From the NCBI RefSeq assembly GCF_000143415.4, contig NW_003314267.1, positions 994,909 through 1,058,908 on the forward strand: a stretch of DNA of 64,000 nt, in the 5' to 3' direction. This DNA comes from Selaginella moellendorffii (Eukaryota; Plantae; Lycopodiophyta). A program made the translations under genes and the position numbers. Numbering within the stretch: the stretch's first letter is position 1; each line of letters starts with the position of its first letter. The notes under the pieces were generated by a model. That model was not told where the DNA came from, ran no database searches, and saw nothing but the letters and a program-made list of their open reading frames with translations. This document shows positions 9,411 to 60,254 of this stretch, piece after piece.

Positions 9411-9417
9411 AACTCCT

Positions 9418-22188: not shown

Positions 22189-23232
22189 ATGGCTGCAATG
22201 GTGTTGATGATTGCGTTTCTCGTGATGGCTGTAGCACGGAAGACGGTGTGTATCCGCAAGAGACAAGAGAGGGCACGATTTCTGGCGTCGCTCCACCCCG
22301 TGAGAGACGCACACAAGATCCTGTGGTACATGTACTCGGTGGAATTCCCCTTCCTCTCGCAAAAGGCGCTCGAGTTTGGCACAATCCGCACGCTGGGCAT
22401 CCCGGGGATCACAAATCTGCTCTTCAAGACCAAGTACGGCCTCAAGGATCCGCAGAAGCGCGCCGCCGAGACCAACATTCTGGTGAGCGAGATGATCCAC
22501 CACCACGTCGACAGCGATCGCGGCTCGTACGCGGTGAGGAGATTGAATGGAATCCACAACAAATTCAAGATCCCAAACGACCAATTCGCCTACGTCCTCT
22601 GCCTCAACGTGGTCAGCCCCATTGATTTCTCCGAGAGATTTGGATTCCGCAAGTGGACCGACAGCGAGAAGGAGGCCGCGTATGTTGTGTGGCACGACGT
22701 GGGCGTGAGGATGGGCATCACAACCATCCCAGATAGCATTCCAGAGATGCGGGAGTACATTCGCGATTACGAGGCCAAGAACGCCATCTTCACGGACAAG
22801 AACAAGAGCATCGTCCAGGATCTCAAGCATCTGGTGCTGGATGCATTTCCTCACCCCGTGCAGCCGCTGGTCGAGACTGGGATCTGTGCACTCATCGATC
22901 CCACAATCAGGAGCGCTGTTGGATTGGAAAGGCCTCCAGCAATTGTGGAGTGGATCATCTTGGGTGCGTTCAAGCTGCTGGCCGGGAGCTTCGTGTCCGC
23001 GTTCTTGCCTCCCAGACGTGTGGAGGATGCAAAGGGCAGCATTGAGGTGGACTGGTGTCCCAATCCCGCTGCCAATCCGGAAGAGTACCGGCAGCTCAAC
23101 GTGAATGTGTATCGCCCACCAGCATTCGAGAAGGGATACAAGCTGGCGGAGCTGGGAGCGCTGAAATCAGGCAAACTTGGACCATACTACGATGGAGGCT
23201 TGCGCTGCCCCTTCCGGCAAATGCACGCATAG
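22189..23232 (+). CDS. MpaB/DUF2236 (Lcp-like) ER-bound heme oxygenase, 347 aa, intronless
   Basis: N-terminal hydrophobic anchor; EFPF..KALEF..RT.GIP.I..LL, PQKRAAET, RRLNGIH, NDQF.YVL, FGFRK, W..VG.RMGI..IP; C-terminal CPF. Confidence 0.85.
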   Translation: MAAMVLMIAFLVMAVARKTVCIRKRQERARFLASLHPVRDAHKILWYMYSVEFPFLSQKALEFGTIRTLGIPGITNLLFKTKYGLKDPQKRAAETNILVSEMIHHHVDSDRGSYAVRRLNGIHNKFKIPNDQFAYVLCLNVVSPIDFSERFGFRKWTDSEKEAAYVVWHDVGVRMGITTIPDSIPEMREYIRDYEAKNAIFTDKNKSIVQDLKHLVLDAFPHPVQPLVETGICALIDPTIRSAVGLERPPAIVEWIILGAFKLLAGSFVSAFLPPRRVEDAKGSIEVDWCPNPAANPEEYRQLNVNVYRPPAFEKGYKLAELGALKSGKLGPYYDGGLRCPFRQMHA

Positions 23233-23409
23233 GAATAGGACGGGCATAGGACATTCGGTCGGAGAACAGAGCATCATTTAAAAATGCGTAGTTTACATGA
23301 ATCTTTTTGTAATTTTAGCGGAAAGGTGGCTAACAAAACCAGATATTCGAAACAAAATTTAGTTTTATCCAAATGGGGAAAAAGAATATCATAAACACAC
23401 TTCTTTCTC

Positions 23410-24069
23410 TCAAGTGGTCATTATGAGCTCCCGGAGGCGGTCGACGAGCTCCGGATTGATCTGGAACGCCTTCTCAAGCACAGCATCGGTGATGGCGGGA
23501 TTGGACGCAAACACGGCCTTGGCAACTGCGGTGACACCTGCGTTCTGGGAGTTGAATCCCGCGAGAGCCACGGCAGGGGTCTCGCCGACATTGAGCTGGA
23601 AGTGCACAAGGCCCCGAGGGAACACGAAGAGATCACCTTGATGCAAGGTCTGCGCGAAGAGCGTGTTGTTGGTGGTGCTCACGAATCCCGCGTAGAGAGT
23701 CCCTTGCTGAACGTAGAGGATCTCAGTGCCCCGGGGATGGACGTGAGGGGCATTGAGACCGAATGGAGCGTAGTCGACCCTTGCGAAGGAGACTCCGAGG
23801 GTGTTGAGCCCCGGGAAGGAGATCACGTTTGCGGCGGTGACGGCGGAGCCAAGCTTGTTGTTGGTGTTCCCGGATTTCTGGAGGCCCGAGAACTTGAAGT
23901 CGGCAGCGGCGGTGGCGGCAGCGGGCTTGCAGGTGAAGCCGTTGATGATGGGGGCAGTGGCGCTGGTGTCGCGCACGCAAAAGTCTTGGAGTGCGTCCGG
24001 GTCGGCGAGTGAGAATGCAGCAGAGATGGTGACGAGGATCGCGAGGAGAATTGCACGGGAACTAGACAT
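23410..24069 (-). CDS. Germin-like protein, 219 aa, intact
   Basis: Signal peptide, [32 protein letters not shown]. Confidence 0.93.
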   Translation of the reverse strand: MSSSRAILLAILVTISAAFSLADPDALQDFCVRDTSATAPIINGFTCKPAAATAAADFKFSGLQKSGNTNNKLGSAVTAANVISFPGLNTLGVSFARVDYAPFGLNAPHVHPRGTEILYVQQGTLYAGFVSTTNNTLFAQTLHQGDLFVFPRGLVHFQLNVGETPAVALAGFNSQNAGVTAVAKAVFASNPAITDAVLEKAFQINPELVDRLRELIMTT

Positions 24070-24815
24070 GGCGATGATGTTGCTTTGAAAACTCGCTTTG
24101 CTTTGCTTTCTTGGTGATAGAAACCAGGAGATTTAGCTGATTGATGTAAGGACTTGCTTGTTCTTTCTTGAGAAGCTCCTTGTTGCTCTTGAGAGATGAA
24201 ATGCTATCCTGATTTTGCTGGCTTTTGAACTGGGATGAGATGCTTGGTTTGATCTCAAGGCTAAGATCGTTTATATAGTCGCAGAAAAACACTGACTTTG
24301 TCAAACTGATTTCTCCAAGGATGACGAAATCCAGTGTGTAGGGAGTCACAAAACAAAAGGCAACGCGTATATCAAACTATTGCTAAGCCTAGTGCCGGCC
24401 CACCTTTGTGCAGTTCATCTCCACCAGGGTCGGTAGCAGCATATTAGAGAAGCATTTTCTTGAATTTTAAAGAAATAAATAAGAGACATAACTTTGCTCA
24501 AGAACATTCCTCTGGAAGAGTAAGAGCTGCAAGGAGCTCTGGAGGAGGATTGTCAAGAATCAGTGAAGTGTGAAGGGCCCTCCTTCCAGTGGGATCTTGA
24601 CAAGGTCTGTCGTAAACCCACATCCTCACGATGTGGCAAAAGAGATACATTGTGCATGCAAAACACAGAACCTCCATTGTAAAGAAAAAATGGAAGCTTA
24701 CCCCAGCATCGATAAGCATGTCTTAAAAAGTCCTCAGCATCCCCTTGATTGATCTTGCAATTCTTGAGCGGTTCCTCAGCCAGCATCCATATACATAGTA
24801 AAAATTTCTTCTTGT

Positions 24816-27659
24816 TCACCAGAACCCTCCACAAGAGCATTTCCCATTTTCAAACACATGAAACCTGCTCGAATCCCTGCACACCACACTCCTGTTCTCA
24901 ACCCTCGAAACTAAAGCAGTCACAGCGTGACAATCCTCGCAAACCCTCAAGTTCTTGGCAATCCGAATGGCACCCTCATCACCCTTCAAGTTGACGAGCG
25001 CGCAAGCCATAGCAAACCTCTCACTATGCCCACACAAGGCATCCCTCCTATCCCCCTCGGCCATCTCTTCGCCCCGCAAGGCACACCTCAAATCCGGGAC
25101 GAAGCCATGATCGCAAATCTTGGCCATAAACTCCGCCACCTTTGCCACGATCATCTCGCCCTGCGGGTGATGGCTGCAATCCCCGGCCCAAAACCTGTGC
25201 ACGCCACCACCCTCGTCGATCCACCAGCTTTCTCCAGCTTGCTTGAAAGCTCCCGCACTCCTCCGCATGGCCTGGATCGCCATGGATTCCTCCCACATTC
25301 CAGCGCCAGCGTACGCATTCGCCATGAGAGCGTACGCCGCGCCGTCGCCAGCGTCGATCTTGACGAGCTCCTCGAACGCCACCCTCCCGATCTCGGTGTT
25401 CCTCCACTTGGAGCACGCGCCCAGCAGCGTCGTCCAGATCATCGCGTTGGGTTCCAGCGGCATCGCCCGGATCGTCGCGAGCGCATCGCCCAGGTGCCGC
25501 GCTCGCCCCAGGAGATCCACCATGCAGCCGTAGTGCTCGATCTTTGGAGCTATGCCGTGGTGGAGCTCCATTGCCAGGAAGAACTCGCGGCCCTTGTCCA
25601 CGAGCCCGGCGCGGCTGCACGAGGTGAGGATCGAGAAGAAGGTAGGGCTCGTCGGCGGGATCTTTCGCTCGATCATCCGGTCGAAGAGCTCGAAGACGCG
25701 ATCCTCGCGCGATCCCTGGTGGCTGTATCCGGCGATGAGCGCGTTGTAAGTCACGGAGTCTCTCTCACCACTGGCAATGGCGTCGAAGATCCTGTGAGCT
25801 TCTTCCATCTCTCCACACCTTCCATAGAAACCAATGAGGGAATTCGCCACCACCGTGCTGTTCTTGAGCCGCCCGGCACGGATCATCGCGTGGATCTTCT
25901 TCCCGGTCGCCAGATCTGCGAGGCTGGCGCACGCCTTGAGTGCTGCGATGAAGCTCTGCGCGCTGGCCTCCATTCTTTCCTGCTGGACCAAGCGGTGGAA
26001 GAGCTCCAGCGCGATCTCGCCATCGCCGGCGTGGGCGTAGCCAGCGATCATCGCGTTCCACGCCACGAGATCCCGCCGGGGCAGCCTATCGAACACCCCT
26101 CTCGCCTCCGCCACCGATCCAGCTCGCGAGTAGCCCTCGATGAGCGCGCTGGCGACGAAGAGATTGGTCTCGAATCCATCCCTGGCGAGCTGCGTGTGGA
26201 TCGCTGCGATCCTCTCCACGCTCGCGGCCTTCACCACTGTCCCATTCATCGATCTCTTCCCTTCCTCACTGGATCCCGCGGCGATGGAAGCCTTGATCCC
26301 CGCGACGTAAGCCCGCGCATCGATCGCCGAAAGCTCGCTCCTCATCCTCGCAAATGCCGCAAGAGCTCGTTGGCCATCGTCGCACTGCGCATACCCCATC
26401 ACCATCGTCGTCCACGCCGCCACACTCTTGCGATCGATCCTCTCAAAGATTGTGCTCGCCTCGTCCATTCTCCCACACTTGGCGCACAGGTCCACCATCG
26501 CAGTGGCCGCGAATCCATCCAGATCGTCGCCGGTCGCCGCGAGGAAGCCATAGATCACCCGTCCTCGATCCAAGAACACCGCCCTCGATGGGATCTTCTT
26601 CTCCTTGGCAGCAGCGATGGCGCAATCTCCGATAGCCGCCACGCTCGCCCGGCGATTGATCGCGAGCCCGTGCCGTCTCATCCGATCAAAGAACTCAACC
26701 GCCGCAGCCACCTCGCCGGATTGGACGTAGCCCAGGATCAGTGCCGTCCACGCCAGCGCGTTGCGACGATCGCCCAGGAAGACTTTCCTTGCATCAGCCA
26801 TGCTTCCACACTTGGAATACATCTCCACCAGCGCGCTCGCCACGGATGGATCTCTCTCGAGATTCAAACTGGAGAGCTTTGCGTGGAGAGCTCTCCCTCT
26901 CTCCAGGCTCGCCATCTTCCCATGATCTTCACTGGTGGCCATGCTCGAGCAAGCAGTGATCGCAGCGATGAAACTCCTAGCATCTGGTCTGATGTGACGA
27001 TCGTTTTCTTTCTCCATCCGGTGGAAGATCTCCAAGGCCATGACTCCTTTGCCAGTGTGAGCGTATCCCTCGATGAGCGCGTTCCAGGAATCCAAGCCTC
27101 GCTCCACCGGCATTGTCTCGAAGAGCTGGCGGGCTGTGGCGATGCTGCCACACTTCGCGTACATTTCCACCAGAGCGTTCCATATGCCGGTGTGGAGGTT
27201 TCTCCCATCGCCGTGGAGATGGACTAGCTCGGCGTGGATTCTCGAGCCTCGATCTAGATCCCGGATGGAGCGGCAGGCTTTGAGAGCGGCGATGGAGGTG
27301 GCGAGAGGCGGAGTGGTGCCGGAGTCGAGCGTTTCTTGGTAAGCTTGTCGAGCTTCTCTGTTGTTGATCTTCTTCCGGGAAGATGATTTGGGAAGAGATG
27401 GATCGCTAAATTTCTTTGACTCGAGATTTTCGCATCGCTTCTCGCAGATGGAAGTCGACTGTGGTACAAAGAAAGAAATGAAATAGACTGCGAAATAAGA
27501 AGAAACTCTACCTTGTTCTTCCTTTCGTGGAAATGCCCTTGCTCCACGGCCGCATTCCTTAGCGCAGTGGAGAAATCTCGCAGGAAAGAACAGATCGCGG
27601 GCGCTCTTGAGATGGGCAGGGGCAAGCGCATCGCGGCTCACCCTGGAATCGTGCGCCAT
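24816..27659 (-). CDS. PLS-class PPR protein with E and DYW deaminase domain (organellar RNA editing factor); likely ATG 27631 with intron 27511-27459
   Basis: Tandem P-L-S motifs; HSE, NLRVCEDCH, RDSSRFHVFENGKCSCGGFW. The spliced form gives a transit-peptide-like N-terminus MRLPLPISRAPAICSFLRDFST. Confidence 0.92.
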   Translation of the reverse strand: MAHDSRVSRDALAPAHLKSARDLFFPARFLHCAKECGRGARAFPRKEEQGRVSSYFAVYFISFFVPQSTSICEKRCENLESKKFSDPSLPKSSSRKKINNREARQAYQETLDSGTTPPLATSIAALKACRSIRDLDRGSRIHAELVHLHGDGRNLHTGIWNALVEMYAKCGSIATARQLFETMPVERGLDSWNALIEGYAHTGKGVMALEIFHRMEKENDRHIRPDARSFIAAITACSSMATSEDHGKMASLERGRALHAKLSSLNLERDPSVASALVEMYSKCGSMADARKVFLGDRRNALAWTALILGYVQSGEVAAAVEFFDRMRRHGLAINRRASVAAIGDCAIAAAKEKKIPSRAVFLDRGRVIYGFLAATGDDLDGFAATAMVDLCAKCGRMDEASTIFERIDRKSVAAWTTMVMGYAQCDDGQRALAAFARMRSELSAIDARAYVAGIKASIAAGSSEEGKRSMNGTVVKAASVERIAAIHTQLARDGFETNLFVASALIEGYSRAGSVAEARGVFDRLPRRDLVAWNAMIAGYAHAGDGEIALELFHRLVQQERMEASAQSFIAALKACASLADLATGKKIHAMIRAGRLKNSTVVANSLIGFYGRCGEMEEAHRIFDAIASGERDSVTYNALIAGYSHQGSREDRVFELFDRMIERKIPPTSPTFFSILTSCSRAGLVDKGREFFLAMELHHGIAPKIEHYGCMVDLLGRARHLGDALATIRAMPLEPNAMIWTTLLGACSKWRNTEIGRVAFEELVKIDAGDGAAYALMANAYAGAGMWEESMAIQAMRRSAGAFKQAGESWWIDEGGGVHRFWAGDCSHHPQGEMIVAKVAEFMAKICDHGFVPDLRCALRGEEMAEGDRRDALCGHSERFAMACALVNLKGDEGAIRIAKNLRVCEDCHAVTALVSRVENRSVVCRDSSRFHVFENGKCSCGGFW

Positions 27660-27730
27660 TGCCCAAGAACCCTAATCCCCATTTCTCTACGCGGGGGTTT
27701 TAGCTGCTCTGTTTTTCTAGGGTTAGGTCG
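27660..27730. promoter_or_regulatory. Very short bidirectional intergenic region with telo-box-like motifs
   Basis: Divergent ATGs ~70-100 bp apart; AACCCTAA (27668-27675) and TAGGGTTAG (27718-27726). Confidence 0.5.
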
Positions 27731-28931
27731 ATGCTGCTACTGGCGCTATGGGCGACGCTGGCGACGATCGCGTCCACAACCGGTGAGACTAGCCCTCTCT
27801 CCAATTGGATTGATGTGATCGCATTCTTCGGGCAGGAGAGGTATGCGTCTCGCAAGGCAATCGATTCCCGAAATTCTCCCTGGAGGGGTGGGCTCCTCGC
27901 AAATCGCCCCGCGGCACAGACGCGCTGAAGCTGTGTAGGATCTTCAGCGGCAGGACGTGCTGCACAGGGATCCAGACGCAACACGCGCTGCTAGCACTGA
28001 GAAATCTGGCCGTGAATGGAGAGGGCGATGAGGTGTGCCAGTCCGTGTGGGAAGTTCTCGAGTGCTCCGTGTGTCATCCTCGGGTTGGAACTTCGGCGGG
28101 GCCTCCAGCGATCTGCCAGGATTTTTGCAATGTGGTATTCTCGTCTTGCTCCTCGGCATTCTTCGCCATGGATCAACCCAAGCAAGTAAGCTTTTTTCTT
28201 TCCTTTCTTTCTTCCTTTAACACCATCTTAGTTCTTCTCGAGCTTTTTTTCTTTGTTTTCTCTTCTTCCGATCATCTTGCTTCCTGCTTTTGTTAAGTTT
28301 TTCTCTTCGTCAGAGTCTTCGTCACCTCATTCTTCTCGAGCTTTGGTTTTTTCTTTGGTTTTGGCTTTGGTGTTGGTTTTTGGTTGCTTCCTATCTTCTC
28401 GCATTGTAGAGGAAGGACTGATATCTTTCGATTCATACAGGCTCTGCTACCTTGCGGCTCGTCCGAGATTATCTGCGCGCAAGGAACGGAGTGGACAAGG
28501 AACAGTAGCCACTTCTGCGAGTTAGCCGGCTTCCGAGTGGTGGAACGCGCAAGCGGAGAGTTTTGCTACGATGGAACGCCAGGGGAATCACTGGAGAAGA
28601 CGAGTCCATCAAGCAAAGATCAGAAAACGAAGAAGCAGAAGAAGCAAGGCAGAACGCCGAGTCCGGAAAGCCCGAGCAAGAAGTTTGATCGCGCGTTCCT
28701 GATGACGGACAAGGTTCTCTGGGCGGTCGCAGGCCTCGTTCTCACAGCCGGTGCCGTGCTCTTCAGGTGAATTTTTTTTTTTCTTTCTTCTCCTTTTTCT
28801 TAGGCTGAGTCGCTTTGTGTTTTGGATCCAGGCAAAGAGGATCACGATCTCGGCAGCGTCGAGCCGCACTGATGAAATCATTGAAAGAGGCGCGAGCTTC
28901 TCAGCAGGCGGCGTACGATAAGAAAAGCTAA
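27731..28931 (+). CDS. Plant folate-receptor-family Cys-rich membrane protein, ~4 exons
   Basis: Signal peptide, VCVSQGNRFP..LCRIF..TCC, LECSVCHP.VG..GPP.IC..FC, FCELAGF, CYDG, C-terminal TM WAVAGLVLTAG; GT-AG introns. Confidence 0.82.
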
Positions 28932-29618
28932 GCTTTTCTTGTGTATTTTTACTTCTGTAAAGATGCATTTGTTATTTGCATCTCTAAAGAAATGGCGCGT
29001 CGACCTTACCAGGACTCAAAAGCGGAAGCCGTTGATGCTTGGTTTGCAGCTTGTCATGCTGCCATAGTTTCTTTCTTTATAGCTGAACAGGAAGCATTGC
29101 TTGAGAGTACGCAGAGGTCCAATGCTTCACTGCGAAGGAGGGCCCTTCACACTTCACTGATTCCTGACAATCCTCCTCCACAGCTCTTACTCTTCCAGAG
29201 GAAAGTTCTTGATCAAAGTTGTGTTTCTTATTTATTTCTTTAAAATTCAAGAAAATGCTTCTCTAATATGGTGCTACCGACCCTGGTGGAAATCAACTGC
29301 ACAAAGGCGGGCCGGCACTAGGCATAGGAATAGTTTGATATACGCGTTGTTTTGCGACTCCCTACACACTGGATTTGGTCATCCTCGGAAACATCAGTTT
29401 GACAAAGTCAGTGTTTTTCTGCAACTATATAAACGATCATAGCTTTGAGATCCTACCAAGCATCTCATCCCAAGCCACCAAACATTTCAGGGCAACATTT
29501 CATCTCTCAGGAGCAACAAGGAGCTTCTCAAGAAAGAACAACATCGATCTGCTAAATCTCCTGGTTTCTATCACCAAGAAAGCAAAGCGAAGCGAGTTTT
29601 CAAAACAAGATCATCTCC

Positions 29619-30278
29619 ATGTCTAGTTCCCGTGCAATTCTCCTCGCGATCCTCGTCACCATCTCTGCTGCATTCTCACTCGCCGACCCGGACGCACTCC
29701 AAGACTTTTGCGTGCGCGACACCAGCGCCACTGCCCCCATCATCAACGGCTTCACCTGCAAGCCCGCTGCCGCCACCGCCGCTGCCGACTTCAAGTTCTC
29801 GGGCCTCCAGAAATCCGGGAACACCAACAACAAGCTTGGCTCCGCCGTCACCGCCGCAAACGTGATCTCCTTCCCGGGGCTCAACACCCTCGGAGTCTCC
29901 TTCGCAAGGGCCGACTACGCTCCATTCGGTGTCAATGCACCGCACGTCCATCCCCGGGGCACTGAGATCCTCTACGTTCAGCAGAGGACTCTCTACGCGG
30001 GATTCGTGAGCACCACCAACAACACGCTCTTCGCGCAGACCTTGCATCCGGGTGACCTCTTCGTGTTCCCTCGGGGCCTTGTGCACTTCCAGCTCAATGT
30101 CGGCGAGACCCCCGCCGTGGCTCTCGCGGGATTCAACTCCCAGAACGCAGGTGTCACCGCAGTTGCCAAGGCCGTGTTTGCGTCCAATCCCGCCATCACC
30201 GATGCTGTGCTTGAGAAGGCGTTTCAGATCAATCCGGAGCTCGTCGACCGCCTCCGGGAGGTCATCATGGCCACTTGA
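29619..30278 (+). CDS. Germin-like protein, intact ORF (G>R change in YVQQRT)
   Basis: Near-identical to 23410-24069, no frameshift. Confidence 0.88.
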   Translation: MSSSRAILLAILVTISAAFSLADPDALQDFCVRDTSATAPIINGFTCKPAAATAAADFKFSGLQKSGNTNNKLGSAVTAANVISFPGLNTLGVSFARADYAPFGVNAPHVHPRGTEILYVQQRTLYAGFVSTTNNTLFAQTLHPGDLFVFPRGLVHFQLNVGETPAVALAGFNSQNAGVTAVAKAVFASNPAITDAVLEKAFQINPELVDRLREVIMAT

Positions 30279-30465
30279 AAGAAAGAAGTGTGTTTCTCTT
30301 TGTGTATGATATTCTTTTTCCCCATTTGGATAAAACTAAATTTTGTTTCGAATATCTGGTTTTGTTAGCCACCTTTCCGCTAAAATTACAAAAACATTCA
30401 TGTAAACTACGCATTTTTAAATGATGCTCTGTTCTCCAACCGAATGTCCTATGCCCGTCCTATTC

Positions 30466-31509
30466 CTATGCGTGCATTTGCCGGAAGGGGCAGCGCAAGC
30501 CTCCATCGTAGTATGGTCCAAGTTTGCCTGATTTCAGCGCTCCCAGCTCCGCCAGCTTGTATCCCTTCTCGAATGCTGGTGGGCGATACACATTCACGTT
30601 GAGCTGCCGGTACTCTTCCGGATTGGCAGCGGGATTGGGACACCAGTCCACCTCAATGCTGCCCTTTGCATCCTCCACACGTCTGGGAGGCAAGAACGCG
30701 GACACGAAGCTCCCGGCCAGCAGCTTGAACGCACCCAAGATGATCCACTCCACAATTGCTGGAGGCCTTTCCAATCCAACAGCGCTCCTGATTGTGGGAT
30801 CGATGAGTGCACAGATCCCAGTCTCGACCAGCGGCTGCACGGGGTGAGGAAATGCATCCAGCACCAGATGCTTGAGATCCTGGACGATGCTCTTGTTCTT
30901 GTCCGTGAAGATGGCGTTCTTGGCCTCGTAATCGCGAATGTACTCCCGCATCTCTGGAATGCTATCTGGGATGGTTGTGATGCCCATCCTCACGCCCACG
31001 TCGTGCCACACAACATACGCGGCCTCCTTCTCGCTGTCGGTCCACTTGCGGAATCCAAATCTCTCGGAGAAATCAATGGGGCTGACCACGTTGAGGCAGA
31101 GGACGTAGGCGAATTGGTCGTTTGGGATCTTGAATTTGTTGTGGATTCCATTCAATCTCCTCACCGCGTACGAGCCGCGATCGCTGTCGACGTGGTGGTG
31201 GATCATCTCGCTCACCAGAATGTTGGTTTCGGCGGCGCGCTTCTGCGGATCCTTGAGGCCGTACTTGGTCTTGAAGAGCAGATTTGTGATCCCCGGGATG
31301 CCCAGCGTGCGGATTGTGCCAAACTCGAGCGCCTTTTGCGAGAGGAAGGGGAATTCCACCGAGTACATGTACCACAGGATCTTGTGTGCGTCTCTCACGG
31401 GGTGGAGCGACGCTAGAAATCGTGCCCTCTCTTCTCTCTTGCGGATACACACCATCTTCCATGCTGCAGCCACCACGAGAAACGCAATCATCAACGCGAT
31501 TGCAGCCAT
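30466..31509 (-). CDS. MpaB/DUF2236-family oxygenase, array copy 1
   Basis: Intact 347-aa ORF from MAAIALM. Confidence 0.85.
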   Translation of the reverse strand: MAAIALMIAFLVVAAAWKMVCIRKREERARFLASLHPVRDAHKILWYMYSVEFPFLSQKALEFGTIRTLGIPGITNLLFKTKYGLKDPQKRAAETNILVSEMIHHHVDSDRGSYAVRRLNGIHNKFKIPNDQFAYVLCLNVVSPIDFSERFGFRKWTDSEKEAAYVVWHDVGVRMGITTIPDSIPEMREYIRDYEAKNAIFTDKNKSIVQDLKHLVLDAFPHPVQPLVETGICALIDPTIRSAVGLERPPAIVEWIILGAFKLLAGSFVSAFLPPRRVEDAKGSIEVDWCPNPAANPEEYRQLNVNVYRPPAFEKGYKLAELGALKSGKLGPYYDGGLRCPFRQMHA

Positions 31510-31869
31510 GTTGAAATTGATCGATCTGATCAACTTGATTGGAGAATGGCTGCTTTTGTTTTCTACTCCTCTGTGGGTTGAGGAAACAGAGGCTGGAGAA
31601 GGGTCTTTTATACTATCCGAGCTATCAGCCACGTTTTTTTATTTCCGTGTGATCCGTATTTTGTACCATACACGTAGCCATATACTTGGGAGAGAAATCT
31701 TTTTTGTTCTATTCGGTGCACGTTTTCCATACAGTTATCTGGTCCATGCAATATATCGGTCCTACCAACTTCGTTTAAGATAGTTTCACCATCCACAAAG
31801 TAATGCGGATAATCTTAATTACAAGGTTTCCACGAGATATAATCCCACGGGCTTTTCTTCCTTGCCTTC

Positions 31870-32350: not shown

Positions 32351-32734
32351 TTGTTGTTGCTGCCTGCTAAAGGAAGTTGTGGTTTTACTACCTTGTTGTT
32401 GCTGCCTACCTAAGTGGTTTTACTACTTTCAATCTTGATTTTTTTGTTGTTTCCATAGCTAAAAATTGTAAGAAATAGTTAACACAACTCAAGCTACTTC
32501 TCTCTACACTTGTTATGCAGGCAACAATGACTAGTGGCTGGCTCACTGGTTTGATCGAGCATGATAGTAAGGACTTCATACTGCCACTGCTTCTTTCCCC
32601 GCTGCTGGGCGGCCTTTTAAGCGAGTTGCTCGTATTTAACCCAGGGCACAAAATGTGGAGCATAGTCATTATGTCACCAAACTTTCAAGTAATCCCCATC
32701 ATTCTGTGAAGTTTTACTCATCGAGATTTGGTTC

Positions 32735-33235
32735 TTGCTCAAGCTGGGTCCTCCCTACAGCTGCCGCATAGATATTGGCCATGAGAACGTAAGCTCAAAC
32801 ACCACCCTTCCAAACTCCATATTCTTCCAATTCGCACACGCGCCAGCACCACCATCCAAATCCTCACGTTTGCTTCCACCGGCATGCTCCTCAAAACACC
32901 TACAGCCTCCTCGATTTGGTTTTCTCCTCCCAGCAAATCCACCAGGCAAGTGCAAGTGCAGTGCTCGATCCCAAGAGCTAAATCGCATGTTTTCTTCAGC
33001 ATCTCGAAGAGCTCCCTGCCTGGATCGACCAGTCCGGCAACCGTGAGAACCAAGAGGAATGTTGGAGCATCCAGCTTGCACCACTCCTCTTGCATCCTCC
33101 CGAACAATTCAAACACCTTGGCGGTGTTTCGTGGATGGCGGTACCCTGCTATCAGTGCGTTCCAAGTTACCGACTCTCGCCTCCCCTCAAGAGTGGCAAA
33201 CACTCGCCGGGCTTCCACCATGCTGCCGCATTGGC
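32735..33235 (-). pseudogene. PPR 3' fragment (long unit type)
   Basis: Degenerate copy of ~52850-53400. Confidence 0.85.
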
Positions 33236-34780
33236 CGTAGACAAAACCAGTATAAAAGGCACATTCTCTACGATAAAAATCTCCACACTGTCTGCGTCCT
33301 AGTTCCTGACCAAGCTCCGGCCGATTTTCAGCAGCCTCTTTAAGCCCGAGTCATTGCTCTTGATCTTGTGCGGGACGTAGATCACTTCCACATCCGGAGG
33401 GATTGGTCTCGCTGCTATCATGCCTTGCACTCGCGGCTGGAAGCTCGCGGCCTTGATCTCTTGCTGCGAGCTTCCATCCTTTGTCGCCATCTTAGTTCTT
33501 TTTCTTTCTTTCTTCTCTCTTCGCGATTGTTTCCTCTTATCTTGCTTCGAGCTTTTGTTAAGTTTTCAGTCTTCTTCATCACTTGATTCTTCTCGAGCTT
33601 TTGGTTTTGTTGGTTTTGGGTTTGGGTTCTCTAAAATGCAAGAAGATAAGCAACAGGAAGGACTGATATCTTTCGATTCATACAGGCTCTGTTATCCGAG
33701 GTTATCTGCGTGCAAGGAACGGAGCAAGGAACAGTAGCCACGTCTGCGAGTTAGATGGCTTTTGAGTGGTGGAACGCCTGCAACCGCCCAGAGAACTCTG
33801 TCCGTCATCAGGAAGGCGCGACCAAACTTCTTGCTTGGGCTTCCTGGACTCGCCGTTCGTTCGTGCTTCTTCTTTTTCTGATCTTGCTTGTCCAATGACT
33901 CCCCTGGCATTCCATTGTAGCAAACCTCTCCGCTTGCGCCTCGTTCTCACTGCCGGTGCCATGCTCTTCAGGTGAAAAAAAGTACTTTTTCTCCTTTTTT
34001 GAGGCTTATAGTCGCTTTGTGTTTGATCCGGGCGCAGCGTTGAGCGGCACTAATGAAATCACTGAAAGAGGCCAGAGCTTCTCGCATTTGTTATTTGCCA
34101 CATCAGCAAATATAACTCCACGTCAGCACTAAATCAGGACCCAACATGTTCAACATGACTCAAAAGAGGAAGCGATTGATGCTTGGTTTTCATCGCATAG
34201 TTTCTTTCTTTTTTTTTTCTAGCTGAAGAGGAACAATACGTTCAGAGTAAATGCTCGTGAGTATATTGGGCTTTTCATGCTTCACTGCAAAAGAGGGCCC
34301 TTCACACTTCACTGATTCCTGACGATCCTCCTCCACAGCTCTTACTCTTCCAGAGGAAAGTTCTTGATCAAAGTTGTGTTTCTTATTTATTTCTTTAAAA
34401 TCCAAGAAAATGCTTCTTTAATATGGTGCTACCGACCATGGTGGAGATGAACTGCACAAAGGTGGGCCGGCACCAGGCATAGGAATAGTTTGATATACGC
34501 ATTGCCTTTTGTTTTGCAACTCCCTACACACTGGATTTCGTCATCCTCGGAAACATCAGTTTGACAAAGTCAGTGTTTTTCTGCAACTATATAAACGATC
34601 ATAGCTTTGAGATCCTACCAAGCATCTCATCCCAAGCCACCAAACATTTCAGGGCAACATTTCATCTCTCAGGAGCAACAAGGAGCTTCTCAAGAAAGAA
34701 CAACATCGATCTGCTAAATCTCCTGGTTTCTATCACCAAGAAAGCAAAGCGAAGAGAGTTTTCAAAACAAGATCATCTCC

Positions 34781-35441
34781 ATGTCTAGTTCCCGTGCAAT
34801 TCTCCTCGCGATCCTCGTCACCATCTCTGCTGCATTCTCACTTGCCGACCCGGACGCACTCCAAGACTTTTGCGTGCGCGACACCAGCGCCACTGCCCCC
34901 ATCATCAACGGCTTCACCTGCAAGCCCGCTGCCGCCACCGCCGCTGCCGACTTCAAAGTTCTCGGGCCTTCAGAAATCCGGGAACACCAACAACAAGCTT
35001 GGCTCCGCCGTCACCGCCGCAAACGTGACCTCCTTCCCGGGGCTCAACACCCTCGGAGTCTCCTTCGCAAGGGCCGACTACGCTCCATTCGGTGTCAATG
35101 CACCGCACGTCCATCCCCGGGGCACTGAGATCCTCTACGTTCAGCAGGGGACTCTCTACGCGGGATTCGTGAGCACCACCAACAACACGCTCTTCGCGCA
35201 GACCTTGCATCCGGGTGATCTCTTCGTGTTCCCTCGGGGCCTTGTGCACTTCCCGCTCAATGTCGGCGAGACCCCCGCCGTGGCTCTCGCGGGATTCAAC
35301 TCCCAGAACGCAGGTGTCACCGCAGTTGCCAAGGCCGTGTTTGCGTCCAATCCCGCCATCACCGATGCTGTGCTTGAGAAGGCGTTTCAGATCAATCCGG
35401 AGCTCGTCGACCGCCTCCGGGAGGTCATCATGGCCACTTGA
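34781..35441 (+). pseudogene. Germin-like protein, +1 frameshift
   Basis: TTCAAAGTT versus TTCAAGTT at 34955-34957; also HFQL>HFPL. Confidence 0.9.
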
Positions 35442-35628: not shown

Positions 35629-36672
35629 CTATGCGTGCATTTGCCGGAAGGGGCAGCGCAAGCCTCCATCGTAGTATGGTCCAAGCTTGCCTGATTTCAG
35701 CGCTCCCAGCTCCGCCAGCTTGTATCCCTTCTCGAATGCTGGTGGGCGATACACATTCACGTTGAGCTGCCGGTACTCTTCCGGATTGGCAGCGGGATTG
35801 GGACACCAGTCCACCTCAATGCTGCCCTTTGCATCCTCCACACGTCTGGGAGGCAAGAACGCGGACACGAAGCTCCCGGCCAGCAGCTTGAACGCACCCA
35901 AGATGATCCACTCCACAATTGCTGGAGGCCTTTCCAATCCAACAGCGCTCCTGATTGTGGGATCGATGAGTGCACAGATCCCAGTCTCGACCAGCGGCTG
36001 CACGGGGTGAGGAAATGCATCCAGCACCAGATGCTTGAGATCCTGGACGATGCTCTTGTTCTTGTCCGTGAAGATGGCGTTCTTGGCCTCGTAATCGCGA
36101 ATGTACTCCCGCATCTCTGGAATGCTATCTGGGATGGTTGTGATGCCCATCCTCACGCCCACGTCGTGCCACACAACATACGCGGCCTCCTTCTCGCTGT
36201 CGGTCCACTTGCGGAATCCAAATCTCTCGGAGAAATCAATGGGGCTGACCACGTTGAGGCAGAGGACGTAGGCGAATTGGTCGTTTGGGATCTTGAATTT
36301 GTTGTGGATTCCATTCAATCTCCTCACCGCGTACGAGCCGCGATCGCTGTCGACGTGGTGGTGGATCATCTCGCTCACCAGAATGTTGGTCTCGGCGGCG
36401 CGCTTCTGCGGATCCTTGAGGCCGTACTTGGTCTTGAAGAGCAGATTTGTGATCCCCGGGATGCCCAGCGTGCGGATTGTGCCAAACTCGAGCGCCTTTT
36501 GCGAGAGGAAGGGGAATTCCACCGAGTACATGTACCACAGGATCTTGTGTGCGTCTCTCACGGGGTGGAGCGACGCTAGAAATCGTGCCCTCTCTTCTCT
36601 CTTGCGGATACACACCATCTTCCATGCTGCAGCCATCACGAGAAACGCAATCATCAACACGATTGCAGCCAT
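35629..36672 (-). CDS. MpaB/DUF2236-family oxygenase, array copy 2
   Basis: Intact ORF. Confidence 0.85.
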   Translation of the reverse strand: MAAIVLMIAFLVMAAAWKMVCIRKREERARFLASLHPVRDAHKILWYMYSVEFPFLSQKALEFGTIRTLGIPGITNLLFKTKYGLKDPQKRAAETNILVSEMIHHHVDSDRGSYAVRRLNGIHNKFKIPNDQFAYVLCLNVVSPIDFSERFGFRKWTDSEKEAAYVVWHDVGVRMGITTIPDSIPEMREYIRDYEAKNAIFTDKNKSIVQDLKHLVLDAFPHPVQPLVETGICALIDPTIRSAVGLERPPAIVEWIILGAFKLLAGSFVSAFLPPRRVEDAKGSIEVDWCPNPAANPEEYRQLNVNVYRPPAFEKGYKLAELGALKSGKLGPYYDGGLRCPFRQMHA

Positions 36673-39566: not shown

Positions 39567-40227
39567 ATGTCTAGTTCCCGTGCAATTCTCCTCGCGATCC
39601 TCGTCACCATCTCTGCTGCATTCTCACTTGCCGACCCGGACGCACTCCAAGACTTTTGCGTGCGCGACACCAGCGCCACTGCCCCCATCATCAACGGCTT
39701 CACCTGCAAGCCCGCTGCCGCCACCGCCGCTGCCGACTTCAAAGTTCTCGGGCCTTCAGAAATCCGGGAACACCAACAACAAGCTTGGCTCCGCCGTCAC
39801 CGCCGCAAACGTGACCTCCTTCCCGGGGCTCAACACCCTCGGAGTCTCCTTCGCAAGGGCCGACTACGCTCCATTCGGTGTCAATGCACCGCACGTCCAT
39901 CCCCGGGGCACTGAGATCCTCTACGTTCAGCAGGGGACTCTCTACGCGGGATTCGTGAGCACCACCAACAACACGCTCTTCGCGCAGACCTTGCATCCGG
40001 GTGATCTCTTCGTGTTCCCTCGGGGCCTTGTGCACTTCCCGCTCAATGTCGGCGAGACCCCCGCCGTGGCTCTCGCGGGATTCAACTCCCAGAACGCAGG
40101 TGTCACCGCAGTTGCCAAGGCCGTGTTTGCGTCCAATCCCGCCATCACCGATGCTGTGCTTGAGAAGGCGTTTCAGATCAATCCGGAGCTCGTCGACCGC
40201 CTCCGGGAGGTCATCATGGCCACTTGA
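39567..40227 (+). pseudogene. Germin-like protein, same +1 frameshift
   Basis: Same lesion as the 34781 copy. Confidence 0.9.
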
Positions 40228-40414
40228 AAGAAAGAAGTGTGTTTCTCTTTGTGTATGATATTCTTTTTCCCCATTTGGATAAAACTAAATTTTGTTTCGA
40301 ATATCTGGTTTTGTTAGCCACCTTTCCGCTAAAATTACAAAAAGATTCATGTAAACTACGCATTTTTAAATGATGCTCTGTTCTCCGACCGAATGTCCTA
40401 TGCCCGTCCTATTC

Positions 40415-41458
40415 CTATGCGTGCATTTGCCGGAAGGGGCAGCGCAAGCCTCCATCGTAGTATGGTCCAAGCTTGCCTGATTTCAGCGCTCCCAGCTCCG
40501 CCAGCTTGTATCCCTTCTCGAATGCTGGTGGGCGATACACATTCACGTTGAGCTGCCGGTACTCTTCCGGATTGGCAGCGGGATTGGGACACCAGTCCAC
40601 CTCAATGCTGCCCTTTGCATCCTCCACACGTCTGGGAGGCAAGAACGCGGACACGAAGCTCCCGGCCAGCAGCTTGAACGCACCCAAGATGATCCACTCC
40701 ACAATTGCTGGAGGCCTTTCCAATCCAACAGCGCTCCTGATTGTGGGATCGATGAGTGCACAGATCCCAGTCTCGACCAGCGGCTGCACGGGGTGAGGAA
40801 ATGCATCCAGCACCAGATGCTTGAGATCCTGGACGATGCTCTTGTTCTTGTCCGTGAAGATGGCGTTCTTGGCCTCGTAATCGCGAATGTACTCCCGCAT
40901 CTCTGGAATGCTATCTGGGATGGTTGTGATGCCCATCCTCACGCCCACGTCGTGCCACACAACATACGCGGCCTCCTTCTCGCTGTCGGTCCACTTGCGG
41001 AATCCAAATCTCTCGGAGAAATCAATGGGGCTGACCACGTTGAGGCAGAGGACGTAGGCGAATTGGTCGTTTGGGATCTTGAATTTGTTGTGGATTCCAT
41101 TCAATCTCCTCACCGCGTACGAGCCGCGATCGCTGTCGACGTGGTGGTGGATCATCTCGCTCACCAGAATGTTGGTCTCGGCGGCGCGCTTCTGCGGATC
41201 CTTGAGGCCGTACTTGGTCTTGAAGAGCAGATTTGTGATCCCCGGGATGCCCAGCGTGCGGATTGTGCCAAACTCGAGCGCCTTTTGCGAGAGGAAGGGG
41301 AATTCCACCGAGTACATGTACCACAGGATCTTGTGTGCGTCTCTCACGGGGTGGAGCGACGCTAGAAATCGTGCCCTCTCTTCTCTCTTGCGGATACACA
41401 CCATCTTCCATGCTGCAGCCATCACGAGAAACGCAATCATCAACACGATTGCAGCCAT
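40415..41458 (-). CDS. MpaB/DUF2236-family oxygenase, array copy 3
   Basis: Intact ORF. Confidence 0.85.
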   Translation of the reverse strand: MAAIVLMIAFLVMAAAWKMVCIRKREERARFLASLHPVRDAHKILWYMYSVEFPFLSQKALEFGTIRTLGIPGITNLLFKTKYGLKDPQKRAAETNILVSEMIHHHVDSDRGSYAVRRLNGIHNKFKIPNDQFAYVLCLNVVSPIDFSERFGFRKWTDSEKEAAYVVWHDVGVRMGITTIPDSIPEMREYIRDYEAKNAIFTDKNKSIVQDLKHLVLDAFPHPVQPLVETGICALIDPTIRSAVGLERPPAIVEWIILGAFKLLAGSFVSAFLPPRRVEDAKGSIEVDWCPNPAANPEEYRQLNVNVYRPPAFEKGYKLAELGALKSGKLGPYYDGGLRCPFRQMHA

Positions 41459-44352: not shown

Positions 44353-45013
44353 ATGTCTAGTTCCCGTGCAATTCTCCTCGCGATCCTCGTCACCATCTCT
44401 GCTGCATTCTCACTTGCCGACCCGGACGCACTCCAAGACTTTTGCGTGCGCGACACCAGCGCCACTGCCCCCATCATCAACGGCTTCACCTGCAAGCCCG
44501 CTGCCGCCACCGCCGCTGCCGACTTCAAAGTTCTCGGGCCTTCAGAAATCCGGGAACACCAACAACAAGCTTGGCTCCGCCGTCACCGCCGCAAACGTGA
44601 CCTCCTTCCCGGGGCTCAACACCCTCGGAGTCTCCTTCGCAAGGGCCGACTACGCTCCATTCGGTGTCAATGCACCGCACGTCCATCCCCGGGGCACTGA
44701 GATCCTCTACGTTCAGCAGGGGACTCTCTACGCGGGATTCGTGAGCACCACCAACAACACGCTCTTCGCGCAGACCTTGCATCCGGGTGATCTCTTCGTG
44801 TTCCCTCGGGGCCTTGTGCACTTCCCGCTCAATGTCGGCGAGACCCCCGCCGTGGCTCTCGCGGGATTCAACTCCCAGAACGCAGGTGTCACCGCAGTTG
44901 CCAAGGCCGTGTTTGCGTCCAATCCCGCCATCACCGATGCTGTGCTTGAGAAGGCGTTTCAGATCAATCCGGAGCTCGTCGACCGCCTCCGGGAGGTCAT
45001 CATGGCCACTTGA
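44353..45013 (+). pseudogene. Germin-like protein, same +1 frameshift
   Basis: Same lesion. Confidence 0.9.
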
Positions 45014-45200
45014 AAGAAAGAAGTGTGTTTCTCTTTGTGTATGATATTCTTTTTCCCCATTTGGATAAAACTAAATTTTGTTTCGAATATCTGGTTTTGT
45101 TAGCCACCTTTCCGCTAAAATTACAAAAAGATTCATGTAAACTACGCATTTTTAAATGATGCTCTGTTCTCCGACCGAATGTCCTATGCCCGTCCTATTC

Positions 45201-46244
45201 CTATGCGTGCATTTGCCGGAAGGGGCAGCGCAAGCCTCCATCGTAGTATGGTCCAAGCTTGCCTGATTTCAGCGCTCCCAGCTCCGCCAGCTTGTATCCC
45301 TTCTCGAATGCTGGTGGGCGATACACATTCACGTTGAGCTGCCGGTACTCTTCCGGATTGGCAGCGGGATTGGGACACCAGTCCACCTCAATGCTGCCCT
45401 TTGCATCCTCCACACGTCTGGGAGGCAAGAACGCGGACACGAAGCTCCCGGCCAGCAGCTTGAACGCACCCAAGATGATCCACTCCACAATTGCTGGAGG
45501 CCTTTCCAATCCAACAGCGCTCCTGATTGTGGGATCGATGAGTGCACAGATCCCAGTCTCGACCAGCGGCTGCACGGGGTGAGGAAATGCATCCAGCACC
45601 AGATGCTTGAGATCCTGGACGATGCTCTTGTTCTTGTCCGTGAAGATGGCGTTCTTGGCCTCGTAATCGCGAATGTACTCCCGCATCTCTGGAATGCTAT
45701 CTGGGATGGTTGTGATGCCCATCCTCACGCCCACGTCGTGCCACACAACATACGCGGCCTCCTTCTCGCTGTCGGTCCACTTGCGGAATCCAAATCTCTC
45801 GGAGAAATCAATGGGGCTGACCACGTTGAGGCAGAGGACGTAGGCGAATTGGTCGTTTGGGATCTTGAATTTGTTGTGGATTCCATTCAATCTCCTCACC
45901 GCGTACGAGCCGCGATCGCTGTCGACGTGGTGGTGAATCATCTCGCTCACCAGAATGTTGGTCTCGGCGGCGCGCTTCTGCGGATCCTTGAGGCCGTACT
46001 TGGTCTTGAAGAGCAGATTTGTGATCCCCGGGATGCCCAGCGTGCGGATTGTGCCAAACTCGAGCGCCTTTTGCGAGAGGAAGGGGAATTCCACCGAGTA
46101 CATGTACCACAGGATCTTGTGTGCGTCTCTCACGGGGTGGAGCGACGCTAGAAATCGTGCCCTCTCTTCTCTCTTGCGGATACACACCATCTTCCATGCT
46201 GCAGCCATCACGAGAAACGCAATCATCAACACGATTGCAGCCAT
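45201..46244 (-). CDS. MpaB/DUF2236-family oxygenase, array copy 4
   Basis: Intact ORF. Confidence 0.85.
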   Translation of the reverse strand: MAAIVLMIAFLVMAAAWKMVCIRKREERARFLASLHPVRDAHKILWYMYSVEFPFLSQKALEFGTIRTLGIPGITNLLFKTKYGLKDPQKRAAETNILVSEMIHHHVDSDRGSYAVRRLNGIHNKFKIPNDQFAYVLCLNVVSPIDFSERFGFRKWTDSEKEAAYVVWHDVGVRMGITTIPDSIPEMREYIRDYEAKNAIFTDKNKSIVQDLKHLVLDAFPHPVQPLVETGICALIDPTIRSAVGLERPPAIVEWIILGAFKLLAGSFVSAFLPPRRVEDAKGSIEVDWCPNPAANPEEYRQLNVNVYRPPAFEKGYKLAELGALKSGKLGPYYDGGLRCPFRQMHA

Positions 46245-47469: not shown

Positions 47470-47970
47470 TTGCTCAAGCTGGGTCCTCCCTACAGCTGCC
47501 GCATAGATATTGGCCATGAGAACGTAAGCTCAAACACCACCCTTCCAAACTCCATATTCTTCCAATTCGCACACGCGCCAGCACCACCATCCAAATCCTC
47601 ACGTTTGCTTCCACCGGCATGCTCCTCAAAACACCTACAGCCTCCTCGATTTGGTTTTCTCCTCCCAGCAAATCCACCAGGCAAGTGCAAGTGCAGTGCT
47701 CGATCCCAAGAGCTAAATCGCATGTTTTCTTCAGCATCTCGAAGAGCTCCCTGCCTGGATCGACCAGTCCGGCAACCGTGAGAACCAAGAGGAATGTTGG
47801 AGCATCCAGCTTGCACCACTCCTCTTGCATCCTCCCGAACAATTCAAACACCTTGGCGGTGTTTCGTGGATGGCGGTACCCTGCTATCAGTGCGTTCCAA
47901 GTTACCGACTCTCGCCTCCCCTCAAGAGTGGCAAACACTCGCCGGGCTTCCACCATGCTGCCGCATTGGC
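47470..47970 (-). pseudogene. PPR 3' fragment (long unit type)
   Basis: Same as 32735-33235. Confidence 0.85.
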
Positions 47971-49515: not shown

Positions 49516-50176
49516 ATGTCTAGTTCCCGTGCAATTCTCCTCGCGATCCTCGTCACCATCTCTGCTGCATTCTCACTTGCCGACCCGGACGCACTCCAAG
49601 ACTTTTGCGTGCGCGACACCAGCGCCACTGCCCCCATCATCAACGGCTTCACCTGCAAGCCCGCTGCCGCCACCGCCGCTGCCGACTTCAAAGTTCTCGG
49701 GCCTTCAGAAATCCGGGAACACCAACAACAAGCTTGGCTCCGCCGTCACCGCCGCAAACGTGACCTCCTTCCCGGGGCTCAACACCCTCGGAGTCTCCTT
49801 CGCAAGGGCCGACTACGCTCCATTCGGTGTCAATGCACCGCACGTCCATCCCCGGGGCACTGAGATCCTCTACGTTCAGCAGGGGACTCTCTACGCGGGA
49901 TTCGTGAGCACCACCAACAACACGCTCTTCGCGCAGACCTTGCATCCGGGTGATCTCTTCGTGTTCCCTCGGGGCCTTGTGCACTTCCCGCTCAATGTCG
50001 GCGAGACCCCCGCCGTGGCTCTCGCGGGATTCAACTCCCAGAACGCAGGTGTCACCGCAGTTGCCAAGGCCGTGTTTGCGTCCAATCCCGCCATCACCGA
50101 TGCTGTGCTTGAGAAGGCGTTTCAGATCAATCCGGAGCTCGTCGACCGCCTCCGGGAGGTCATCATGGCCACTTGA
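49516..50176 (+). pseudogene. Germin-like protein, same +1 frameshift
   Basis: Same lesion. Confidence 0.9.
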
Positions 50177-50363
50177 AAGAAAAAAGTGTGTTTCTCTTTG
50201 TGTATGATATTCTTTTTCCCCATTTGGATAAAACTAAATTTTGTTTCGAATATCTGGTTTTGTTAGCCACCTTTCCGCTAAAATTACAAAAAGATTCATG
50301 TAAACTACGCATTTTTAAATGATGCTCTGTTCTCCGACCGAATGTCCTATGCCCGTCCTATTC

Positions 50364-51407
50364 CTATGCGTGCATTTGCCGGAAGGGGCAGCGCAAGCCT
50401 CCATCGTAGTATGGTCCAAGCTTGCCTGATTTCAGCGCTCCCAGCTCCGCCAGCTTGTATCCCTTCTCGAATGCTGGTGGGCGATACACATTCACGTTGA
50501 GCTGCCGGTACTCTTCCGGATTGGCAGCGGGATTGGGACACCAGTCCACCTCAATGCTGCCCTTTGCATCCTCCACACGTCTGGGAGGCAAGAACGCGGA
50601 CACGAAGCTCCCGGCCAGCAGCTTGAACGCACCCAAGATGATCCACTCCACAATTGCTGGAGGCCTTTCCAATCCAACAGCGCTCCTGATTGTGGGATCG
50701 ATGAGTGCACAGATCCCAGTCTCGACCAGCGGCTGCACGGGGTGAGGAAATGCATCCAGCACCAGATGCTTGAGATCCTGGACGATGCTCTTGTTCTTGT
50801 CCGTGAAGATGGCGTTCTTGGCCTCGTAATCGCGAATGTACTCCCGCATCTCTGGAATGCTATCTGGGATGGTTGTGATGCCCATCCTCACGCCCACGTC
50901 GTGCCACACAACATACGCGGCCTCCTTCTCGCTGTCGGTCCACTTGCGGAATCCAAATCTCTCGGAGAAATCAATGGGGCTGACCACGTTGAGGCAGAGG
51001 ACGTAGGCGAATTGGTCGTTTGGGATCTTGAATTTGTTGTGGATTCCATTCAATCTCCTCACCGCGTACGAGCCGCGATCGCTGTCGACGTGGTGGTGGA
51101 TCATCTCGCTCACCAGAATGTTGGTCTCGGCGGCGCGCTTCTGCGGATCCTTGAGGCCGTACTTGGTCTTGAAGAGCAGATTTGTGATCCCCGGGATGCC
51201 CAGCGTGCGGATTGTGCCAAACTCGAGCGCCTTTTGCGAGAGGAAGGGGAATTCCACCGAGTACATGTACCACAGGATCTTGTGTGCGTCTCTCACGGGG
51301 TGGAGCGACGCTAGAAATCGTGCCCTCTCTTCTCTCTTGCGGATACACACCATCTTCCATGCTGCAGCCATCACGAGAAACGCAATCATCAACACGATTG
51401 CAGCCAT
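50364..51407 (-). CDS. MpaB/DUF2236-family oxygenase, array copy 5
   Basis: Intact ORF. Confidence 0.85.
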   Translation of the reverse strand: MAAIVLMIAFLVMAAAWKMVCIRKREERARFLASLHPVRDAHKILWYMYSVEFPFLSQKALEFGTIRTLGIPGITNLLFKTKYGLKDPQKRAAETNILVSEMIHHHVDSDRGSYAVRRLNGIHNKFKIPNDQFAYVLCLNVVSPIDFSERFGFRKWTDSEKEAAYVVWHDVGVRMGITTIPDSIPEMREYIRDYEAKNAIFTDKNKSIVQDLKHLVLDAFPHPVQPLVETGICALIDPTIRSAVGLERPPAIVEWIILGAFKLLAGSFVSAFLPPRRVEDAKGSIEVDWCPNPAANPEEYRQLNVNVYRPPAFEKGYKLAELGALKSGKLGPYYDGGLRCPFRQMHA

Positions 51408-60239: not shown

Positions 60240-60254
60240 ATTGTCAAGTTCCCC

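Follow-up and report, generated by a model that had tools for sequence, protein, structure and literature searches.

The locus described here lies in a 64,000-nucleotide stretch of the Selaginella moellendorffii genome (contig NW_003314267.1; hereafter the window), in which a gene for a protein of the MpaB/DUF2236/Lcp family, referred to below as the oxygenase, occurs in six complete copies and one partial copy, accompanied by genes for germin-like proteins (GLPs) or their remains. From position 20466 on, the window corresponds to 21,044 letter-identical bases on scaffold GL377571.1 of the same species (GCA_000143415.2).

Oxygenase gene copies and repeat units

The copies of the oxygenase gene, and the units that carry them together with a GLP, are the following:

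22049-24591: inverted GLP and oxygenase unit, ~95% identical to the array units (self-BLAST)
22189-23232, + strand: oxygenase copy 1, 347 amino acids (aa), intact, in the inverted unit (open reading frame, ORF; 98% identical to copy 2)
29122-51765, no strand: tandem array of five GLP and oxygenase units in the order long-short-short-long-short (self-BLAST)
30466-31509, - strand: oxygenase copy 2, 347 aa, intact (ORF, Pfam, AlphaFold2)
35629-36672, - strand: oxygenase copy 3, 347 aa, intact (coding sequence, CDS, same as in copies 4 and 6)
40415-41458, - strand: oxygenase copy 4, 347 aa, intact (ORF)
45201-46244, - strand: oxygenase copy 5, 347 aa, intact, with one private synonymous change (ORF)
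50364-51407, - strand: oxygenase copy 6, 347 aa, intact (ORF)
60254-63978: further GLP and oxygenase unit, running past the window end (self-BLAST)
60256-60801, - strand: oxygenase copy 7, residues 1-182 only, ending at an AT-rich block (tblastn; homology begins at 60254)
31595-31617, - strand: TATA-box promoter motif of copy 2, a 23-mer (GATAGTATAAAAG...; exact-match count)

The first-pass annotation had described six complete, intact and nearly identical ORFs of 347 aa plus a partial seventh, and this description was borne out: all six run from ATG to stop and are 0-9 nucleotides (nt) apart, and residues 1-182 of the seventh are present. The length is counted from the conserved ATG; longer ORFs, started by GTG, take in the 5' leader. 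Copy 2 differs from copies 3-6 at 4 sites; between copy 1 and the rest there are 7-9 differing sites, most of them within codons 1-30, in the part that encodes the N-terminal helix of the protein. Upstream, the 23-mer TATA motif precedes all seven copies (the others at 22060, 36758, 41544, 46330, 51493 and 60887); its seven exact matches in the window compare with 0 expected, and it is conserved also in the copies of the gene found on another scaffold, GL377605.1.

Regarding the architecture of the array, self-BLAST of the window gave unit lengths of 4786 bp or ~5160 bp and pairwise identities of 99.4-99.98%. This layout is probably the product of a very recent tandem amplification specific to the Selaginella moellendorffii lineage, as part of an overall explanation that is judged likely. 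Such similarity, up to 99.98% across 9.5 kb, is also what the 2011 Sanger assembly would show if it had over-expanded or misassembled the repeat, in which case the true copy number would be lower, and this assembly keeps both haplotypes as separate scaffolds; however, the units differ in a structured way (the long and short pattern, private single-nucleotide differences, an inverted unit at 95%), arrays of the same gene stand on several other scaffolds, and the 90% protein cluster of the oxygenase holds 22 member sequences, all of which makes an assembly artefact extremely unlikely.

Within this family of recent copies, the oxygenase ORFs are under purifying selection: comparison of the window copies with those on GL377605.1 gave dN/dS values of 0.13-0.30, and comparison with a paralogue of 70% identity gave 0.16. 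Between units 1 and 2, identity is 99.1% for the oxygenase CDS, 97.9% for the GLP CDS and 81% for the region upstream of the GLP; the oxygenase is thus the conserved part of the unit, by selection or by gene conversion.

As for transcripts, contigs that look like RNA, from two public runs whose RNA status is a guess, cover 30354-31560 without gaps and nothing else of the unit, leaving the GLP and the intergenic DNA uncovered. One of them ends in adaptor at 31560, ~45 nt downstream of the TATA box; the pattern fits an intronless mRNA with short untranslated regions, the guess about the runs applying here too.

Protein family, fold and predicted chemistry

Copy 2 served as the query for Pfam, for the structure model and for all searches. 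The protein belongs to the MpaB/DUF2236/Lcp family, as proposed from the first reading of the DNA, and Pfam, fold and the conserved Arg, Thr and His agree on this point. It scored 47.5 bits with PF09995 (MPAB_Lcp_cat), for which the Pfam gathering cutoff is 23 (E 3.1e-12; positions 38-216 of the 231 in the profile), and a profile built from 48 homologues matched one solved structure by sequence, the trans-anethole oxygenase (TAO) 8s1j, with E 3e-17. The AlphaFold2 model is all-helical, with pLDDT 89.4 and pTM 0.89; Foldseek with this model retrieved 8s1j (E 1e-7, TM 0.69) and Lcp, and the all-alpha fold contains the 3/3 globin core of Lcp and TAO.

At least 90% of the 48 homologues keep R91, T95 and H123. 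H123 lies within RRLNGIH and is aligned to the N.IH of TAO, while R91 and T95 lie within KRAAET, with the R-x3-T spacing of Lcp; this pair precedes His123 by 28 residues (30 in Lcp), the mapping to Lcp being one of motif spacing and not a residue-level structural alignment. In Lcp, Arg164 and Thr168 are active-site residues and His198 is the proximal heme ligand (PMC5522427). At the N-terminus, a hydrophobic stretch, MAAIALMIAFLVVAAAW, is followed by RKREER, and the model places a helix at residues 2-34; the hydrophobic helix and the basic residues are aligned with those of fern, chytrid and protist members, and this predicted helix matches the membrane anchor of fungal MpaB, which is bound to the endoplasmic reticulum (ER) (PMC11934065).

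Among the characterized proteins, TAO from Stenotrophomonas maltophilia (PDB 8s1j) is the closest in fold to the Selaginella protein, but it is a soluble bacterial enzyme with 19-20% identity to it, and it has neither the N-terminal membrane helix nor the C-terminal extension, with its conserved GY.I..LG motif, of the eukaryotic members. The closest architecture is instead that of the eukaryotic ER-anchored MpaB type: Penicillium MpaB/MpaB' of the mycophenolic acid pathway belongs to the same Pfam family and has the same arrangement, an N-terminal anchor and then the catalytic domain. MpaB' is an ER-bound oxygenase that cuts the farnesyl chain of FDHMP (PMC11934065), and the name given by NCBI to the Selaginella paralogue is "mycophenolic acid synthesis protein B-like"; unlike the Penicillium gene, however, the window copies have no mycophenolate cluster genes near them, and the plant genes form a clade of their own with ferns and Ginkgo. 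Lcp from Streptomyces sp. K30 (PDB 5o1l/5o1m) is more distant, being a secreted bacterial protein with extra N- and C-terminal domains, 12-15% identity and no match at the sequence level; its distal Lys167 corresponds to Glu94 in the Selaginella protein and to Asp in most eukaryotic members. Finally, LdrE/LdrF of Aspergillus oryzae, DUF2236 regulators associated with lipid droplets (bioRxiv 10.1101/2022.11.24.517872), are eukaryotic PF09995 proteins that would fit a lipophilic substrate handled at the ER, but they are known as lipid-droplet regulators and not as oxygenases.

By analogy with these relatives, the Selaginella protein would work like TAO, MpaB' and Lcp, that is, as a heme-dependent alkene cleaver acting on hydrophobic substrates. 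The amplified gene would then encode a membrane-anchored, probably heme b-dependent dioxygenase, tethered to the ER membrane by the N-terminal hydrophobic helix (residues 2-34) in the manner of fungal MpaB'; its globin-like core would bind heme via His123, the distal O2 site would be lined by Arg91 and Thr95, and the enzyme may cut the C=C bond of a lipophilic substrate, such as one with a prenyl or propenyl side chain, into an aldehyde or ketone.

The germin-like neighbours and the origin of the gene

The germin-like genes in the window are the following:

17899-18537, - strand: third, divergent germin-like gene, 55% identical to GLP1 (Cupin_1 E 3e-43)
23410-24069, - strand: GLP1, intact, 219 aa, with signal peptide and HxH...E...H cupin motifs (translation)
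29619-30278, + strand: GLP2, ORF intact (219 aa), final Gly of germin box B changed to Arg (Cupin_1 E 1.4e-45, the Pfam Cupin_1 search having been done on GLP2)
34781-35441, + strand: GLP3, pseudogene with a frameshift (+1 A following codon 59) and a stop near codon 115 (DNA alignment, translation)
39567-40227: GLP4, lesion as in GLP3 (DNA alignment, translation)
44353-45013: GLP5, lesion as in GLP3 (DNA alignment, translation)
49516-50176: GLP6, lesion as in GLP3 (DNA alignment, translation)
63696-64000, + strand: GLP7, start only, ending at the window edge, frameshift as in GLP3 (translation)

The first-pass annotation had placed a GLP tail-to-tail with every oxygenase copy. The geometry stood, with the convergent stop 177 bp away for copy 1 and 187 bp away for copies 2-6, but only GLP1 and GLP2 are intact. 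Five of the seven are pseudogenes: alignment of the GLP 5' regions revealed the same 1-bp insertion in GLP3-6 (TTCAAG to TTCAAAG), the start of GLP7 has this lesion too, the tblastn matches of the frameshifted copies are split over two frames, the downstream frame of GLP3-7 also carries a Gln to Pro change in germin box C, and the public annotation calls genes for GLP1 and GLP2 only among GLP1-7. The founder of units 3-7 already held a dead GLP, which would then have been carried along in the amplification. The divergent gene at 17899-18537 implies that the locus already had more than one GLP gene. Tandem arrays of GLP genes are known in plants, and the window locus resembles them in having several GLPs with the Cupin_1 domain and a signal peptide; unlike in those arrays, its copies are mostly frameshifted and were duplicated within a unit whose intact gene is the oxygenase.

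These data bear on the proposal, made on first reading, that the oxygenase and the GLP, the latter with H2O2 or oxalate chemistry, form a functional cassette amplified for defence or specialised metabolism. The constant tail-to-tail spacing (177-187 bp in all seven units) and the intact state of GLP1 and GLP2, with signal peptide and metal-binding motifs, agree with it. However, besides the lesions of GLP3-7 and the box B change of GLP2, three oxygenase copies on GL377605.1 (96.5-98% identical) have no GLP anywhere in 21 kb, and the 70% paralogue has none within 21 kb, its neighbours being a GDSL lipase and receptor kinases. The DNA homology between the window and GL377605.1 surrounds the oxygenase CDS only: it begins 262 nt before the ATG and breaks off in mid-spacer, 91 nt beyond the stop codon. 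The RNA-like contigs lie on the oxygenase and none on the GLP, and the locus already had more than one GLP gene, as the divergent third gene indicates. A functional cassette is accordingly highly unlikely; of the loci examined, only the one in the window shows the linkage, and there the GLP neighbour is mostly a pseudogene. The pairing is better explained, as a component of the overall account that is considered probable, as a local accident duplicated with the unit, in which the GLP is a passenger and not a functional partner. This negative result keeps the GLP pairing from being over-read.

The array on GL377605.1 (261711-282754) has features of its own: two of its three oxygenase copies are convergent and 1.5 kb apart, one copy is shortened to 321 aa, and it adjoins strictosidine-synthase-like and alpha/beta-hydrolase genes, with assembly gaps (N runs) in the promoters.

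Regarding the origin of the gene, word-based protein searches, with the Selaginella protein or with a 16-sequence alignment, found nothing beyond the Selaginella cluster, and an exhaustive HMMER search of 1.84 billion representatives gave 1197 relatives. The best matches after the Selaginella cluster were proteins of Adiantum nelumboides and two of Ceratopteris richardii (36-42% identity), and then those of chytrids and of a Chloroflexia bacterium; a search seeded with Adiantum added six Adiantum paralogues, four Logan contigs and Ginkgo biloba Gb_25975, a protein that shares 38% identity with the window copy over an alignment of 333 residues. With the best 150 representatives included, the plant clade contained no sequence from an angiosperm or a bryophyte. 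An Atlas search with the Ginkgo protein returned only fungal clusters, of at least 50 members, and is uninformative on plant range.

The FastTree phylogeny, made with 131 sequences, unites Selaginella and the ferns in a clade at 96% support; in the IQ-TREE analysis (LG+C20 PMSF), made with 57 sequences, the clade comprises Selaginella, ferns and Ginkgo and has 98% SH-aLRT support. This plant clade is nested in a group, supported at 99%, in which every identified member is a eukaryote, with the one identified bacterium outside. Its eukaryotic neighbours are chytrids (Gaertneriomyces), Paraphysoderma (Blastocladiomycota), Basidiobolus, Phalansterium (Amoebozoa), Pharyngomonas (Heterolobosea), Hemiselmis (a cryptophyte), Salpingoeca (a choanoflagellate) and a pedinophyte green alga. 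When plants and the pedinophyte were constrained together, the tree scored 23 log-likelihood units above the free quick search, with a p value of 0.81 in the approximately unbiased (AU) test, so that their monophyly is not rejected.

The gene structure points in the same direction. The window copies are intronless, as first noted, but the 70% paralogue, on GL377594.1, has a 98-nt GT-AG intron of phase 2 in codon 152 (CRE|FGFR), and a related Logan contig is interrupted by an intron in the same codon, also in phase 2; in the window copies the reading frame continues across this point, with the intron precisely gone. Because the intron is common to the paralogue and the Logan contig, its absence from the window copies is derived: the amplified copies have secondarily lost the phase-2 intron of the family. 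In Adiantum and Ceratopteris, the genes take up more DNA than their coding sequences need, which implies introns there too. That the dispersed copies arose as retrocopies was ruled out, in that the homology between loci reaches ~210 bp beyond the inferred transcript start on the upstream side and includes the TATA box.

An alternative, also raised on first reading, is that the oxygenase entered Selaginella from a bacterium or fungus by horizontal transfer and was then expanded. PF09995 is best known in bacteria and fungi, the language-model neighbours of the protein are fungal clusters, the amplified copies are intronless, and the plant clade holds no angiosperm or bryophyte among the representatives named above; moreover, with weak deep branches, an ancient move into the vascular-plant ancestor, with an early-diverging fungus or a protist as donor, would be compatible with the tree. 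Against a transfer into Selaginella itself stand the position of ferns and Ginkgo as the closest kin in a single clade at 98%, the bacteria outside the 99%-supported eukaryotic group, the higher likelihood of the tree that joins plants and green alga, the spliceosomal intron of the paralogue, whose position is common with another contig and makes the intronless state derived, and the length of the fern genes. Transfer is therefore regarded as unlikely, and the claim of horizontal acquisition did not hold up: the gene probably belongs to an old vascular-plant clade (lycophyte, ferns and Ginkgo) and is no recent microbial import, a judgement that again belongs to the favoured explanation as a whole. 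As the oxygenase illustrates, an intronless gene with a microbial look is no evidence of transfer, and the locus fails as a case of horizontal transfer as it does as a case of a two-gene defence cassette.

Several points weigh against the explanation preferred here, namely a recently amplified, old plant gene for an ER-anchored heme dioxygenase with a GLP as passenger. Heme binding, membrane location and reaction are inferred from homologues. The Ginkgo protein Gb_25975 has Ser at the position of Arg91, the equivalent of Lcp Arg164. The intact state of copies that are 99.98% identical says little, because there has been no time for them to decay. Two raw RNA-seq runs of 2026 have almost no reads on the unit, so that expression would not be constitutive; it may be limited to some conditions, or the RNA-like contigs may come from a differently labelled source. 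Finally, the tree backbone is poorly supported, with many forks below 80%, which leaves room for an ancient transfer into an early vascular plant.

As for what the locus may mean, literature searches found no paper on plant PF09995 members. It is possible, though doubtful, that non-angiosperm vascular plants keep a clade of heme dioxygenases, anchored in the ER and so far unstudied, whose targets are prenyl or propenyl side chains, and that the burst in Selaginella is a dosage response for a lineage-specific metabolite or defence compound; if so, plants would have a new class of alkene-cleaving enzymes in addition to the carotenoid cleavage dioxygenases. An active enzyme would give plants a second means of cleaving alkenes oxidatively, one that is based on heme and has so far been known from bacteria and fungi alone. 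Lycophytes, ferns and Ginkgo would have retained it, with strong amplification in one spikemoss, whereas no angiosperm with it turned up in the searches made. The oxygenase would then be a definite starting point for work on the chemistry of Selaginella and ferns, and likewise for biocatalysis, as in the production of aldehydes from propenylbenzenes or prenylated phenols.

Neighbouring genes and minor repeats

The genes around the units are of the kind usual for this lycophyte. Two PPR genes lie between or beside the units:

24816-27659, - strand: PPR-DYW gene (RNA-editing type), intact, intronless, between the inverted unit 1 and the array (Pfam PPR, E_motif, DYW_deaminase)
52825-55710, - strand: PPR gene (E-motif), intronless, flanking the array (Pfam)

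The long units of the array contain a 444-bp fragment of a PPR gene, at 32739-33221 and 47474-47956, and the 3' part of the PPR gene at 52825-55710 is source-like for these fragments, with a self-BLAST match of 87% between 32794-33241 and 52951-53402. On the other side of the array, a folate-receptor-like gene lies at ~27731-28931 (+ strand), and the layout around it is palindrome-like, with arms of ~2.5 kb that are 95% identical (22049-24591 and 29128-31628) and enclose the PPR-DYW and folate-receptor-like genes.

In the inter-gene part of the repeat unit, the segments 32552-32649 and 33408-33597 have matches among contigs or reads of very high word depth (up to 5763), which run on into unrelated sequence; the segments look like captured pieces of highly expressed genes or of a genomic repeat. 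Downstream of the array, an AT-rich block of ~4 kb (56200-60250, GC content 0.31-0.33) stands where the 3' half of copy 7 of the oxygenase and the greater part of the accompanying GLP would be expected; ORFs of more than 111 aa, long terminal repeats and inverted repeats were looked for in this block and none was found. A GLP tail fragment lies at 56112-56213.

In the first part of the window, an ORF at 13402-14559 (- strand) has a partial protein kinase domain (Pfam E 3e-8) and is probably one exon of a receptor-like kinase gene, or else a fragment. A segment of ~1.8 kb occurs at 1301-3085, 7147-8931 and 9417-11403, with two direct copies that are 99.8% identical and one inverted copy at 85-90%; every copy has a 12-nt tandem array (GTCCGAGATGGA, ~25-32 copies), which gives long spurious ORFs in several frames, and the segment is probably a transposon or a satellite-bearing repeat.

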